Origin: Paragordius varius
Lineage: Eukaryota; Animalia; Nematomorpha
DNA length: 64,000 bases
Direction: 5' to 3'
Assembly: GCA_964247055.1 (NCBI GenBank)
Contig: OZ176051.1
Coordinates: 8,866,001-8,930,000, forward strand
Below, piece by piece: positions 16,746 to 32,030 of this stretch (position 1 is the stretch's first letter; each line of letters opens with the position of its first letter). The position numbers and the translations under genes were made by a program. Under the pieces are notes generated by a model. It had not been told where the DNA came from. It saw only the letters and a list, made by a program, of their open reading frames with translations, and ran no database searches.

Positions 16746-16789
16746 TTAAACTTTGCTTTAATCATAATTTTTGAATGTTTTTTAATTTT

Positions 16790-19460
16790 ATTACAGATAG
16801 TAAGCAGTTACTAACAATTTCTACACATAAGGGGTTTTATAAGTATAAACGATTGCCTTTTGGGTTGAATTGCGCTCTAAGTTTCTTTCAACAAATAATG
16901 GACGAGTTATTAAAAGATTGCACAGGTACCGCCGTTTATTTAGATGACGTTATAGTGACAGGCGAAACCGAAAAGCACAAGGACAATCTAATAAAGGTAT
17001 TTACCAAATTGGAGACAATGGGATTAAAATTGCGCAAAGATAAAATAAACTTTTCAACCATCTGTGGAATATCTTGGTCATATTATTTCTGAAAATTGCA
17101 TTAAACCCTCCCCAAATAAAATTAAAGCCATCCAAGAGTGCCCGACCCCGACCAACAAAACCACTCTTAGATCATTTTTGGGTTTACTTAATTTTCATGC
17201 AAAATTCATCCCTTCCCTAAGCATTTTAATGGGCGAACTACATAAATTAGCAGGTAACAAACAAAAATGGTGTTGGACGCTAACGCATGATTCGATATTC
17301 GAAAAAGCTAAAGACTTGATCTGCCAGAGTAGTTCCTTGCATCCGTATAATCCCAAACTACCTATAGTCTTGGAAACCGACGCGTCAATGTCATACGGTG
17401 ATATTTTATCACATAGAACAACAGCGGGTAATCGTCCGATCGCCTACACGTCAAAAAAATGCTCTCAAGCTGAAGAAAACTTTCAGTAATTGAGCGAGAA
17501 GCAAAAGCTATCCTAATAGCGTTAGAGAAGTTTAAAACCTTTTTGTATTGCAGAAAATTTATAATAAAAACGGACCACAAACCTCTAGTGAAACTATTTG
17601 GGCCTCAAAGAGACCTAAATAAAATTAATAATTGTAAACTAGTACGCTGGATAACTAGAACATCGGTATTCGATTTTAACATAGAATATCACCCTGGTAC
17701 AGAAAACATAGCTGTCTGCCTATCGAGACTTCCCATCGAAAACCAGGAGCCGATGGCTTTTGAGAAAGACGATGAAAGTAGCTATGTTCATTTGTATTTG
17801 GTCCAACGAATTAAATTTAAATAGAGAAATTATATATCAAGAGTCGATAAAGGATCCTACGATAGCAAAATTAAAAGTAGCCCTAAGGTCTAATAAATTG
17901 GACGGACCCCCTGGTCAAGCCTTTCATCGCAATAAAAAATGAAATTGAGGATGCATACGGTCTATTATTTGTGGGAGATCGGGTAATAATCCTGAACAAA
18001 ATTAAGCCAGAGATTTTAAGATACCTGCATAGTGGCCATCCGGGAATACAAGCCATGAAACTATTAAGCCGTGAAAAGGTTTATTGGCCCGGGTTGAGCC
18101 AAGATATCGAAAAATGGGTGCGTAGTTGCCAAAATTGCCAAAGGCTGCGCCCTAATGTACCCGAAAATCCCACCTATCAATGGAACGGGAATACAACTAT
18201 ATGGGAACGGCTCAACCTAGATATCGCTGGACCCATTGACAATTTATACTGGGTAGTACTAATTGATCATTGCACCCGCTGGGTGGAGGTAGAGACGTTA
18301 CGCTCTGTGAATACAGGTAATATTCTAAAGTTTTTAGAAACCTGTTTTTGCCGGTATGGGTACCCAAAAGTGGTGGTTACTGATAACGGCTCTTATTTTA
18401 AATCGGGGGAGTTTGAGAGAACTTTAGCTTCCTCTAATATAAAACACGTAACATCAGCTCCCTACCACCCCCGAACAAATGGGTTGGTAGAGAGGGTAAT
18501 TTACACTCTAAAAAATCTTTATTCAATGTCAACCCCACTTTCAGCAGACCCAGTGCGAAGATTAAACCAAATCTTATGGGCTTACCGAAACACGCATCAC
18601 AGTTCCACGAAGGAGACCCCCGCGCATTTGTTTTTAAAAAGAACTATGCAAAGCCCATTTACATGGATGAAAACGAAACCCAACGAATTCATGGATACTC
18701 CCGACATTGCGCAGGAGTTTGAAAAGGGGCAAAAGGTATATATCAAGAATGAATTGTGTACTGGTTGGAGGGAGGGACAAATCGTCGACAGAACGGGATG
18801 GTTATCGTACAATTTCAACGACAATGGCAAAATTATCCGCAAACATGCTGATCAATTAAAGAATCGCATGGATTGGTCGGCCGAAGGAGAAGACGGGAGA
18901 AGTGAGGAAAGACTAAAAATCTAGATAACCCGGAAATATCAATCAGCATTCCTAACTCATCATCCGCAAACTTAAACAACAATGATAATAACCTCCGAAA
19001 ACATCCCACGGAACATGAAATAAGAACCCCTGAAAACATCGAGGAGAATCCGGAATCAGAAAGTGCGCCTTCAAGTGAGAATACTCCCGTGCAAACAAGT
19101 GACACTTCTCCTACTACGACTCGCCGGTACCCGATTCGATCCCGAAAGCCACCCGACCGATATCAAGCTTAAGGAAGAAGATGTTAAAAGGGTTATTATC
19201 ATACGCAAATTATCCTTCTCTTTTTTAGTGCATAATACACTTTTGTCCTTGTTACGTTAAAAATATATTACCTGGTGGTGAATGCAAATTTTATTTATAC
19301 TTATTATCTTTAACAACGTTTAAATCAGACAACTTTATCCTTGTGAATGCAATACCAAATTTTATAATATATATAAGGAATCATTGTGACACGCAGATTA
19401 TAATATATTAATCAGTTTTGTTGTATACTAAATAAATATATATATATCCTTTTTTATATC
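16790..19460 (+). mobile_element. 5'-truncated Ty3/Gypsy LTR retrotransposon (pol pseudogene plus probable 3' LTR)
   Basis: RT (YKRLPFGL...AVYLDD), RNase H (ETDAS, TDHKPL) and integrase (HSGHPG...CQNC zinc finger; LDIAG, TDNG, NGLVE core) in Gypsy order, with frameshifts. Polypurine tract AAGGAAGAAGA at 19171-19181 is followed by TG at 19182. The LTR end is approximate. Confidence 0.92.
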
Positions 19461-26474: not shown

Positions 26475-26508
<34 letters not shown>

Positions 26509-26555
26509 ATAAAGGTTTTATGCCCCGGGCGCCGCAAATGCTCGGTACGCCACTG
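26147..26555. mobile_element. hAT-type MITE (409 bp)
   Basis: Perfect TSD GAATTATG (26139-26146 / 26556-26563). TIRs caggggcgtaccga / tcggtacgccactg. Internal gccccgggcgcc motifs and a G29 run. Confidence 0.93.
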
Positions 26556-27134
26556 GAATTATGATGCTCTTTTTAGGTGAAGATTTACGGTCATTTAAAT
26601 TATAAGCACACTTTTATAATAGTAATTTAACCGTATTAGGATCACAAATTTAGCGCACATTATGGTAAATAAAATCAATAAAAGATTCGAATGTTATTAT
26701 CAATTTCATATACGATAATATCACTATAATCCATTACACATGTATTAAATCCAAAACTCAATTGAGTTGGAAATGTTTTAGGTAATGATGCATGGGTATC
26801 GACTTTAACTGTTAGATGGGAAGAAAATGCAAATTTAGTGATTAATAAGGAAACATTGGGCATTTAAACAAAGGAAAATTAAAACAGAACAATGATTACA
26901 CGTTTGAAATAAAATATATAATGTATAATTAGTTAAAAATATTAGGAGATCATACTAAAATAAGTCCGAATTATAGAATTATGATAATATCACCATTCTA
27001 AATGCATACCGAATAATCAAAATATTTTATGTACATGTGTAATATTATATGATCATATATTTGAAGTAATAAGACGCATAATTTTATTCCTGCTGGAATA
27101 TTATTTAATGAGTTTGATTAAAATATGGCAGTAT

Positions 27135-27950
27135 TTATAACAGTATCATCTTCATCCGTACATTATATATCATTAACATGCTTTCCAATGTTATACAAGA
27201 CACCACATGATGTATGATATCTGGAACCTTTTCAGTGGCACCGCGAACTTTGTTTGGGATGGGAAATAGGCTTTTCAATTGTTTAAAGACACGATCTGTG
27301 ATAGAACGTTCGGTTGCATGTATTCTATTGTAGTAATGCTCCATATCAGTCTTTGGGTATCGAACAGGGGTCATAATGGATGGTCGTATTCCATAAGCAC
27401 TGTCGTCACCAAAAAGGCTTCCCTACGCTTTGAGTTCGTTTATAATAATTTTGATAAGACTGTTGCTATATATGCGAGCGTCACATGTCCCACCAAAGCT
27501 CAAAATCTCAATTGATGTCAACGTTTTTGTGGCATTAATAGTGGCCTGAACGTTAAGGCTGTTTTTTTCGGTTTAAGTATAACCAAGCTAGTTTAGATGG
27601 TTTCGAAACTTCAATGTGTGTGCAATCAATAACACCCACAATATTTGGGATGCTGCTTTTGTAAAGGTCTTTTTCCCTTTCAATATCACCAAGACGGGAG
27701 TAGCCAGAAACTTCATCCATTTTTAACACAATCCGGAGCATAAATTTGATAGGTAAGGTATTATTTTTGCTACGCAACTTAGTAATATCCCGAAATCCTA
27801 AGCACCCTTGGATTGTGGTTCTATTAGGTAACGGATAAATATCTTAAACATTTTTCCATAGCCTAAGGACCCAACTTTTTTATTTTGCCTACCTTGTATT
27901 TGAAAGATTTTTTGTGTCATTACATCTATGATGGACGATGAAAAGCGTAA
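27135..27950 (-). pseudogene. PIF/Harbinger (HARBI1-like) transposase pseudogene
   Basis: Minus-strand fragments IPNIVGVIDCTHIEV...YLNRKK, GDDSAYGIRPSIMTP and YNRIHATER match DDE_Tnp_4 motifs. Frameshifted. Confidence 0.8.
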
Positions 27951-28611
27951 AAAGGTTTTACGCCATTTATAGGTATATCACTTTTGATATTCCTTCTTGA
28001 GGTCCGAATCCTTAATAAAAAATGCAAAAAGCGACTGATTATGTACATATATATAAATGTATATTAAGCGGCGATAATTGATCGAACGCCAAAATAGTAA
28101 ATGTTTTAAAAGCTAGAAACTGCATAAAGACATACGAGTATTGATCTAGATTACTATCACTAAGATTTATTACTAATGCAAAAAACATTTAAAAAAGTAA
28201 ATTATTCATTTAATAAAAAAATATTTTACCTATAATCACACGAGGAGCTTTGATAGTTTTAAGTGCTTGACTAAGAAACCAAATAAAATTATATAAGAAT
28301 CTCAAAAGAAAAATCTAAAATACTTGTTGACAATTACAACTAAAAAATTATTGGAAGCATTGGTATCAACATGTCTGTAACTTATGACGTAAAACCAAAT
28401 AATATGAAATTTAATGCTCTATAGAAATAAACAAATTATAAACCCAGAATCGCAAACATACATTAGACTGAGAAAAAAATTTATGGATTCCATGTCGATG
28501 GATTATCCACCATCCAATACCGGATCTTTTATAATATTATTGGACTTTCATCAAAATAATGTAGTTGTCGCAAAAATTTTCAAATTTAAAAAACCGATCT
28601 TATAATAGTAA

Positions 28612-31282
28612 ATGAAAATAACTGAGGAGTTAACTCCGTTTGTATATTGGTCTCAAACCGACGATACCATCAAACTTAAATTGGAAATCACCAATTTATC
28701 AGTTTTATTAGTTTAAATTTTAGGAACAAGACATAAAAATTGATGAAAATTTATTTACATTTTTTGCATATGCCAAAGGATATAATGGCTACAATAATTA
28801 TGCCTTTCAATTAGCATTTTCCTACCCAATAAAGGTATAAAAATGTTGTAATTTAAGAGTTATAAAGTTGTAGAACATGCATATTGTACCGAAATATTTA
28901 TTGAAAAAGATTTTAAACAAAAATGGTCATCTATAACCAAAGACGCTAAACCTACCTGGTTAAAGGTCAATTTTGAAGATTGGTCCGATTCAGAAGATGA
29001 TAAACTTAAAGAGGAATTTTATGATAATGATATGAATAATTATATGGAAGAATATAAATCTCCAGACGAAATAGGTATTTAAAAGTTGTCATGTTTTATA
29101 TGTAGTTGAATGGCAAACGTACAATACTCTATTGTTTTATGATAGCTTCATATTTGTCTGTTATTTAACACTTTGTATCAAAATTTGTTATCAATACCTA
29201 TATGATCCTATTGGTATTAATGCATTTCTTTATCCAATGTAGATTTTAAATCCCATGTCTACCAAAAATATCACCGACACCTTTTAATATTACAAATTTT
29301 GCCAATTATTTTTGAATCTTTATATGCCTTATATAATTTTCATAGCGATAACCGTTTTGTGAGATATAAATGGTACCATAAGATTACTGAAGTATTTTTT
29401 TAAATTTAATTTTTGGATATTACATCGAATATGTATCCAATATTTTTGTCTTGAGCTCATTGTCCCAATGCAAAGTAAACCCATAATTTTTAACTTATAC
29501 CTTGTTTGGATTTTGGATATTCTTTTGAGGTATGGTAAAAATTTATATTTTTTTTTGTATATTTACATTCAAATCTTTAATATCGAATTTTGCCACATGG
29601 TTTTTAATTAAATAAATACAAAACAGTTATTAACTGGAGTATAGTGCATTATTTGATATATTATGTACCTTCCCCTAAGTTTAAATGTCCGAAAAAAACA
29701 TACCTTAATATATTATGTTTAATATTCAGTTTATTTTAATAAAATTTCATAAATTTTAAATGTATTAAAAATAATATTTTTCTAAATCATTATTAACTAA
29801 TTCGATCCTTCAAATAGATACTATCATTGAACAATTATAGTTTAAAAATACAATTTAAATTTAAGTAAGCACGTTGAATTCATAAAGATTATATTTGCAA
29901 CGGTAAAGTGATATGACGTGTAAAGATTAATTTTAATGTTAACATAGGACTTCCAATTGAACTTTCTATACTGTATATTTGATTTTTTAAAATATAATTA
30001 AGAGAATAAATTGTATTTTTAGATAATTTACATCATATCATAATCGTAGATTATTAAATTATAACTTAAAATGAACAACATTATTAATATAAAAATATCA
30101 TTAAAAATTACGTTTATAAGAAAAATTTATTAATATCAGTTGGTAAAAATATTTTTAGCGCTTTTTTTTAAAAAAACTTTATAATAAGCTATGCTGGACA
30201 AATTTAATGATGTTTTAAGACAAAAAACACAAATGGGAAATTTCTATACTGAAATATAAGTGAAATTTATCCTGCGTACATTGACCATTTTGTTTTTAAA
30301 ATTTTAAATTGGGATGAGTTACATTACCCCATACTATTTTACCCAACTTTTATTTTAAATATTGATTGAAATCATATTTTTATATTTCCAACTTAAACCT
30401 TATGATTGTTATCTATTTATAACTAATAACATTCAAATTTTTTATTTTTGTGTACTTATTCCTTATTTTTTGCATTTTAAATCAAGAGTGTCATATATTC
30501 CATATTTGTCTTTTGATTTATATAATTAGATATCCGTATTACATGAGTTGTAGTTTATGCAGCAATTCGATTCCCGATAATACAGAATCTCAGACGAAAT
30601 ACAATAGCAATGATCGTAGTAATAGTATTTTATATGTTACACGATGGTTAAGATATACGGTTTGGATACCAGTTTATTTCCTTTGCTTTATGATTGAATG
30701 TAAGCAATTTTTTCTTTCTAAATTTTATTGGAATGATATGATCATTCATATAAAAAAATCCAATATTTTGCTTGATATTGGAATTTTAAATTACTAATTT
30801 TACCATACATTGTTAAATAAGGCCTTCCAGATATATCAAAAAATACAATTTTTCAATAAAAAGCATATATTTACTTGACCGCAATCATATATAATTTTAC
30901 CATTATGTTTATTTATTTTTAATTAAATCTAACTTAAAACTGCTATATTTAAACATTCATTTTCAAGTGTTAAATTTTCTATTATATAGCTGTTACGGTT
31001 TTGCGAGCGGCATCATTCTACAAGAAATCAGAGGTGGAAAACCCTACTATTAACTACAAACTACAAAAATATGTGAGAATGGATGTTTTGATGGAAACTT
31101 ATACCTTTTTCATGTTAATAGGTGAATGGTTTTTTACTCACTCTTTTTTGCCAAAGTTAATAGTTTTTAAGTTTTATGTTTATCTCTTAGGCATGATTTA
31201 TACCATATATCATGTGTTTGAAAAGCGCAAAAGAATTTTTGGCACCATCTGGGATTTCGTTAAAGTAAAAAAACAAATCTAG
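28612..31282 (+). CDS. HACD3: Very-long-chain 3-hydroxyacyl-CoA dehydratase 3 (PTPLAD1), 390 aa, 9 exons
   Basis: Exons 28612-28701, 28724-28834, 28858-29074, 29106-29213, 29243-29358, 29393-29529, 30530-30699, 30990-31121, 31191-31282 (1173 nt, stop-free). N-terminal p23/CS domain (LTPFVYWSQ; WLKVNFEDWSD), PTPLA core WLRYTVWIPVYFLCFMIE with the catalytic Tyr/Glu spacing, and C-terminal KKQI ER-retrieval motif. Confidence 0.9.
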
Positions 31283-31439
31283 AATCGAACAATGTGGACC
31301 AAACACACATATTAACAAATGAAAGATTTTTATTATATTTTTTGTGTCAGAATAATTGATTTTTGGATTATTCGTATGATTTAATAAATATGAGAATAAA
31401 TTTTAAATTTTGTTTATTATTATCATTATATATAGGTCA

Positions 31440-32030
31440 TAATAATCATAATAATAATTCTAGGTAAGTAAAATTATGAGATCTATTTGCGTATAAATCC
31501 AAAATAATTATATCAATGATGATGTATCGTCTTTGTGTAATGGCTAGCCATTGTATCCGTATAGAACCTGTCTGTAATATTTGCGATCCTGCCAGGCGTT
31601 ATCATCAATTTTGACTTAAATCATTATTTATTGTTTTTTCCAGTTAAATGTTGGTCTGCCCCTGCGATTGTTACCTTCGGGATGTAGGGATAAAATTTTA
31701 TTTGTCCATTGTTCTGGAGCACGTTTGATATCCGAAATATCTATGCCTATTTCGGAGTATAAAATTTAAAGATTCGATTTGGTACAGTTGATGCAAATTT
31801 GAATTTGACTTATTGGGATCGAATAAATTTAGCATCCGCTTTTCTATGTTCATTAGTTTTTTCTCGATTTAATCTGTCATCGGCCATGTCTCGCTTCCAT
31901 ACAGGAGTATGGCACGTATGCCGGCTTTGTAGATCAAACCTTTGTTTTTTCTGATATATGTTTATTTTTGAGCACATTTACCCAAACCTGTTGGGATCTA
32001 TAAATCATTTTTTAAAATTAAAAAAGCCTT
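31440..32030 (-). mobile_element. RTE-clade non-LTR retrotransposon 3' fragment
   Basis: Minus strand reads IYKAGIRAILLYGSETWPM...RRGRPTFNW, the RTE C-terminal signature, followed by an (ATT)n-like tail. Similar to 63230-63780. Confidence 0.7.

Follow-up and report, generated by a model that had tools for sequence, protein, structure and literature searches.

The window analysed here is a stretch of 64,000 nucleotides (nt) from the genome of the hairworm Paragordius varius (assembly GCA_964247055.1, contig OZ176051.1; C2:8866001-8930000 in the contig numbering used below), taken from an assembly of 110.6 Mb in 44 contigs. It is AT-rich, with a G+C content (GC) of 24-38%, and contains an intronless PP1 gene, regions resembling mobile elements and, from position 28612 onwards, a nine-exon gene whose product appears to be a very divergent HACD3-like protein. 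The coding region of this gene is interrupted by five segments of only a few tens of nucleotides. The first of them measures 22 nt, or 21 nt in a second allele; the first, second and fourth are under ~30 nt, and the other two measure 31 and 34 nt. Very probably, all five are genuine U2-type GT-AG spliceosomal introns, the first five of a functional, single-copy gene, although their excision from the transcript is something that we infer from genomic DNA. This reading draws on the anatomy of the gene, the behaviour of the segments in DNA from several samples, the recurrence of the same class of intron in conserved genes, and the canonical recognition sequences of the U1 and U2 small nuclear RNAs (snRNAs), each of which was observed directly.

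Anatomy of the gene and predicted identity of its product

On local translation, removal of the five tiny segments leaves an open frame that starts at the ATG at 28612. Once the introns of 1000, 290 and 69 nt are taken out as well, the gene model consists of nine exons with 1173 coding bases and 390 codons, in which the sole stop codon is the terminal one (Table 1). GT-AG ends are found in all eight introns. An earlier reading made from the letters of the window, referred to below as the original prediction, had proposed five GT-AG introns of 22, 23, 31, 29 and 34 nt, a sequence free of stops after their removal, and the three longer introns in the same gene. The coordinates and ends of the five tiny segments (GT and AG in 5/5) agree with that proposal exactly, the frame obtained runs through all 390 codons, and each of the three longer introns was recovered with GT-AG ends. 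The shortest of these three has a length divisible by three and is free of stops in the reference; it is nevertheless non-coding, because other samples carry insertions and deletions (indels) inside it whose lengths are not multiples of three (-1, +2 and +2 at 31153, 31163 and 31165).

Table 1. Exons, introns and frameshifting variants of the HACD3-like gene, in window coordinates
Feature	Position	Strand	Remarks
exon 1	28612-28701	+	30 codons from ATG; predicted start of p23/CS-like domain
intron 1	28702-28723	+	22 nt, GT-AG, phase 0; a 21-nt allele exists
exon 2	28724-28834	+	37 codons
intron 2	28835-28857	+	23 nt, GT-AG, phase 0
exon 3	28858-29074	+	72 codons + 1 nt; predicted C-terminal p23/CS strands, acidic linker
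intron 3	29075-29105	+	31 nt, GT-AG, phase 1; same length in the 820-nt contig of run X3
exon 4	29106-29213	+	open frame in the model
intron 4	29214-29242	+	29 nt, GT-AG, phase 1
exon 5	29243-29358	+	open frame in the model
intron 5	29359-29392	+	34 nt, GT-AG, phase 0
exon 6	29393-29529	+	split Arg codon joins exon 7: ...LLR|YPYY
intron 6	29530-30529	+	1000 nt, GT-AG; covered by DNA contigs
exon 7	30530-30699	+	predicted PTPLA core, WLRYT motif, Tyr...Glu 7 residues apart
intron 7	30700-30989	+	290 nt, GT-AG; indels of -22, -2 and +1 in other samples
exon 8	30990-31121	+	from the model
intron 8	31122-31190	+	69 nt, GT-AG; multiple of 3, stop-free in the reference
exon 9	31191-31282	+	stop codon; C-terminus KKQI, a KKxx-type motif
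frameshifting indel sites	28703, 29549, 30807, 30862, 30944, 31153, 31163, 31165, 31396		

The product was characterized by family, structure and protein searches carried out exon by exon. Exon 3 matches residues 82-116 of human p23 (PTGES3, 1EJF) with E = 0.0011 in a sequence search of the PDB, and an atlas search returned a weak CS/NudC lead for the same exon. Exon 7 matches positions 75-101 of the Pfam family PTPLA with E = 0.0018 and 18.4 bits, the curated cut-off being 27. The PDB search covered exons 1, 2, 3 and 7 and gave a relevant match for exon 3 only; the Pfam scan covered seven exon pieces and gave a relevant match for the exon 7 piece only, with none to CS; exon 6 returned no match in the atlas search. 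Two matches of exon 3 in a large representative search were rejected as spurious and of low complexity.

The name HACD3-like was adopted because of the two exon-level matches together with the motifs, and it refers to HACD3 (PTPLAD1) because a p23/CS domain followed by PTPLA is the layout of that protein. As judged from sequence, the product would consist of an N-terminal p23/CS domain and a C-terminal PTPLA domain, that of the 3-hydroxyacyl-CoA dehydratases, in a very divergent form. It would share with HACD3/PTPLAD1 the passage from p23/CS to a multi-pass PTPLA region, and it has the WLRYT motif, the Tyr and Glu spaced seven residues apart, and a C-terminal tail of dilysine type; the Tyr and Glu would be the catalytic pair, as in the work on yeast Phs1. 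It differs from HACD3/PTPLAD1 in the great divergence of the sequence, of which two exons in nine find a database match by themselves, and in a lineage-specific insertion of ~25 residues in exon 7. The exon 3 sequence is present in a single copy in the genome.

Intron boundaries, variation among samples and rival explanations

A blind scan across the whole window, in which GT-AG segments of 15-80 nt had to join two open frames with a minimum of 30 codons each, did not yield more candidates for GT-AG than for control dinucleotide pairs. Because this joining criterion does not discriminate when used alone, it was replaced by a chained-path control: the 918-nt region 28612-29529 was searched for stop-free paths with at most five removals of 15-45 nt, using all 256 pairs of boundary dinucleotides. 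A five-step stop-free path is permitted by 37 of the 256 pairs, which are mostly built from the very frequent AA, AT, TA and TT. By itself, a restored frame is weak evidence. Restoration with GT-AG ends, in contrast, is not a matter of chance, because other pairs that are equally rare or rarer fail: GT-AG is the sole success among the 99 pairs with a count product no larger than that of GT and AG, and there are three successes among the 163 pairs up to twice the GT x AG frequency.

The same control bears on whether the boundaries are placed correctly. The gene could be real and at least one of the five boundaries wrong, if another donor or acceptor is used, a micro-exon has been skipped or the transcript has alternative isoforms, in which case the intron lengths would differ from those given here. 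The boundaries were indeed set by reading frame and GT-AG ends only, and intron 5 contains a second in-frame GT. Such misplacement is nonetheless unlikely: a blind scan found the five boundaries again, with a single solution for introns 1-4; five is the smallest number of removals that opens a stop-free path through the region; and the alternative donor of intron 5, at 29373 (segment 29373-29392), leads to a stop after 30 codons.

Contigs from four sequencing runs (X1, X3, X5 and X6) allow the locus to be followed in other samples. All four runs are DNA, because their contigs cover the 1-kb intron. In X3, which is another sample, a contig of 820 nt runs from 28742 to 29555 without a gap, and introns 2-5 therefore have the same lengths there. 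In intron 1, a common 1-nt deletion at 28703, present in contigs of X1, X3 and X5, produces the 21-nt allele. In intron 2, one X1 haplotype differs at 6 of 19 internal bases (28839-28854), but its length, both ends and an internal TGTAAT are unchanged. GT and AG are retained in the variant haplotypes. None of the nine frameshifting indels listed (Table 1) touches an exon: all are situated in predicted introns, three of them in the 69-nt one, or beyond the coding region. Exons account for 37% of the stretch, and under a uniform distribution nine indels would all miss them with a probability of ~0.017 (0.63^9). The sole exon indel, a net change of -3 at 28626-28629 in exon 1 of one sample, removes one Glu codon. 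The single-nucleotide polymorphisms (SNPs) listed for exons comprise 6 synonymous and 8 non-synonymous changes and no stops. At 31073, in exon 8, three of the four samples carry A for G, which changes Val to Met.

A number of observations weigh against a functional spliced gene, and several of them would suit a decaying pseudogene, whose tiny segments would be sites of frameshift with GT-AG ends by coincidence. A search of sequencing runs found the locus in eight, none of them recorded as RNA, and the runs presumed to be RNA contained no words of the gene; the contigs of X1, X3, X5 and X6 contain no spliced joint. The protein is so divergent that exons 1, 2, 4, 5 and 6 have no family or structure match of their own, the PTPLA match of exon 7 falls below the curated Pfam cut-off, and no HACD3 was retrieved with exon 3 by a word search, which had no hits, or by the large representative search. 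SNP density is ~1.2% in exons and long introns alike, so that purifying selection leaves a modest signal. AT-rich non-coding runs would in any case be expected to collect more indels, and the variant listing left out 24 SNPs and 2 indels. Many dinucleotide pairs made of A and T only restore the frame as well. A pseudogene is improbable all the same. It would have to be the only copy in the genome, with nine exons free of stops, a proper terminal stop and a KKxx-type tail. Its apparent introns would carry the one boundary pair that works among 99 of comparable rarity, and nine frameshifting indels would all have avoided the exons, where the one indel present removes exactly one codon. Moreover, a segment of the same kind lies inside an invariant motif of BiP (see below), so the class is real in this genome. 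The third rival, that the segments are assembly artefacts or, as in ciliates, sequences eliminated from the DNA of body cells, is hardly credible: short removals bounded by TA also restore the frame, and the lengths resemble those of the sequences eliminated in Paramecium, but in contigs of four runs (with three samples apart from the one richest in the locus, and three organism labels) the segments are complete and at high depth and no DNA contig has the joined form, which rules out both DNA-level removal and the assembly indel errors that the original prediction had named as a refuting case.

The runs themselves show a further pattern. X5 and X6 contain DNA that is 95-100% identical to 28300-31500, at low depth. 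X5-X8 date from 2024-2025 and carry four other organism labels; of the words sampled, X7 and X8 contain only 5-7%. Such a pattern would be expected if a parasite had been sequenced together with its hosts.

The same intron class in other genes and its splicing signals

Tiny GT-AG introns of the kind proposed for the HACD3-like gene recur in conserved genes of the same genome. A PTPLA paralogue (C2:10153553-10154042) has introns of 23, 25 and 21 nt between consecutive Pfam segments, and the 21-nt intron interrupts the motif WLR|YT. In the BiP/GRP78 gene (C4:12482200-12484300), a 23-nt GT-AG intron (locus positions 91-113) splits the Cys codon of the invariant GTTYSCVGV. A 28-nt intron follows ...FPYT in the same gene (locus positions 350-377), which also has an intron of 66 nt; across the 28-nt junction, BiP proteins of other animals can be aligned with no break in residue numbering from one side to the other. 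A myosin gene on C5 contains a 32-nt intron, whose length is exactly that expected from the coordinates of the hidden Markov model. For comparison with the nearest annotated hairworm (see below), a BiP of Gordionus was sought, and it was absent from the best 120 word-search matches, with none of those listed above 84% identity.

How frequent such introns are was judged from about 60 junctions defined by homology in genes for HSP70, CCT and myosin, a survey biased against short exons, which missed the HACD3-like gene itself: most of these junctions are 50-900 nt long, and two or three are under 40 nt. Because the majority lie at 50-900 nt, the tiny introns look like a clustered minority class and not like a genome-wide norm with a median below 30 nt.

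The splicing signals of the class are reduced. In the 11 tiny introns examined, the 5' end reads GT followed by A, T or G, and the 3' end is (T/A)AG. Every one of them contains a TAAT, TAAAT, TATAT, CAAT or TTAC element, the A residues of which lie mostly ~6-9 nt before the 3' end; elements of this type are common by chance in DNA of ~20% GC. The G at position +5 is missing from four of the five tiny introns of the HACD3-like gene and present in introns 5, 6 and 7. Only one of the 11 tiny introns has a length divisible by three.

The original prediction had gone further in two respects. It took the lengths of the five introns, none of them a multiple of three, to be as expected if retention must trigger nonsense-mediated decay (NMD); this argument is not supported, as five such lengths in five have a chance probability of 0.13, and a common allele of intron 1 measures 21 nt. 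If retained, this 21-nt allele still yields an in-frame TAG. It had also concluded that the spliceosome handles both tiny intron-defined and kilobase introns. An unusual spliceosome is not needed, since both snRNAs that recognize the intron are of standard type: U1 snRNA (124 bits), encoded by full-length genes, has the canonical ACTTACCTG, and U2 snRNA (178 bits) has the recognition sequence GTAGTA. Because these canonical recognition sequences are kept, special machinery is unnecessary. What stands of the original prediction, on indirect tests, is its core, namely real ultra-short introns in an HACD3-like gene.

Most likely, then, the ordinary U1/U2 machinery would recognize the tiny introns across the intron, as has been proposed for myxozoans. 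A minimal intron would keep GT(A/T/G), an element containing A, a short T-rich spacer and the 3' AG. The A-containing element ~6-9 nt before the 3' end is the likely, though putative, branch site.

The snRNA genes are present in many copies. U1 has 17 matches in all, with its genes clustered at C6:565-633 kb. In one high-scoring U1 copy (C6:606254-606419), ACTTACTTG replaces ACTTACCTG in the sequence that recognizes the 5' splice site, a change that would pair with A, not G, at exon position -1. U2 genes are highly multi-copy, with 46 matches, many of them degenerate, and form clusters near contig ends (C3:257-527 kb and C2:11.95-11.99 Mb).

Known short introns and the hairworm context

The introns of Paramecium measure ~25 nt, and those of the Bigelowiella nucleomorph 18-21 nt. 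The hairworm segments share with these systems their length range and, probably, removal by a conventional spliceosome. These lineages differ in being unicellular and in having nearly all of their introns tiny, and a depletion of lengths divisible by three has been documented in them genome-wide, whereas in the hairworm such a depletion is not demonstrable from about a dozen introns. Still shorter introns, of 15-16 nt, are those of Stentor, another ciliate, as cited in PMC13644364.

In animals, a comparison of 51 genomes (PMC13644364; Mol Biol Evol, September 2026) restricted introns under 30 nt to two groups, the myxobolid myxozoans and Dicyema japonicum, and interpreted them as convergence in tiny, reduced parasites; their signals are described there as reduced (GTa/AG), with A residues ahead of the AG, and the U2 as canonical. 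The myxobolids (Henneguya salminicola, Thelohanellus kitauei and Myxobolus rasmusseni) are a close likeness: these animals, too, have GT-AG introns, which measure ~20-30 nt and show a 5' signal reduced to about GTa, a few A residues shortly before the AG, no real polypyrimidine tract and canonical U2, and the short introns cluster within genes (PMC13644364). They differ in that the median myxobolid intron is 22-27 nt, so that tiny introns are the norm, in compact genomes of cnidarian parasites. In the hairworm, by contrast, the tiny introns look like a minority beside introns of 50-1000 nt, in the genome of a bilaterian, an ecdysozoan, that contains transposable elements. According to the summary in PMC13644364, D. 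japonicum resembles the hairworm in that it is a bilaterian and a parasite, has introns below 30 nt and shows reduced motifs at its splice sites, but it belongs to another phylum and tiny introns dominate its genome; the resemblance does not imply that the two are linked by descent. For Nematomorpha, the literature searched, the coverage of which was incomplete, yielded no report of such introns, and neither of the two preprints on hairworm genomes uses the word 'intron'.

Annotated relatives place the window among hairworms. Of the matches listed for its PP1 protein, one from Gordionus sp. m RMFG-2023 reaches 84% identity across 98% of the length, and none of the others exceeds 72%. On the strength of this comparison, the gordiid hairworm Gordionus is the closest annotated relative. 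Gordionus DNA has a GC of 26.9-27.6%, similar to that of the window, and the region 10 kb to each side of the PP1 orthologue in Gordionus contained no HACD3 exons.

Published hairworm genomes are 200-300 Mb in size. Completeness of the Gordionus genome by BUSCO is 71.6% (metazoa_odb10), and hairworm genomes have been reported with 'rampant loss of universal metazoan genes'. Exons of 30-70 codons split by introns of 22-34 nt would be invisible both to predictors with a minimum of ~40 nt and to homology searches made exon by exon. The original prediction held that standard gene predictors would miss genes of this kind, which is plausible: the whole-genome Pfam scans with CS and PTPLA did not pick up the HACD3-like locus. 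As the PTPLA scan missed this gene, claims of gene loss in hairworms may need rechecking. Tentatively, Nematomorpha might be a third animal lineage, independent of the other two, in which introns of 21-30 nt are spliced, and part of the low BUSCO score and of the reported gene loss might be an artefact of annotation, because common gene predictors forbid introns this short; we regard this as possible but doubtful. The hairworm case would add an ecdysozoan lineage in which tiny and 1-kb introns stand in the same genes. If so, two modes of intron recognition could be compared within a single spliceosome.

Two further features of the window resemble mobile elements. At 16775-19105 lies the pol region of a retrotransposon of Ty3/gypsy type (RVT_1, RT_RNaseH_2, Integrase_H2C2 and rve), which accounts for the local rise in GC to 35-38%. 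At 26500-27960, minus-strand open frames lie between two similar GC-rich ends, GGGGGCGCCATAAAGG... at 26500 and ...AAAAGGTTTTACGCC at ~27945, and this segment, just upstream of the HACD3-like gene, looks like a candidate DNA transposon.

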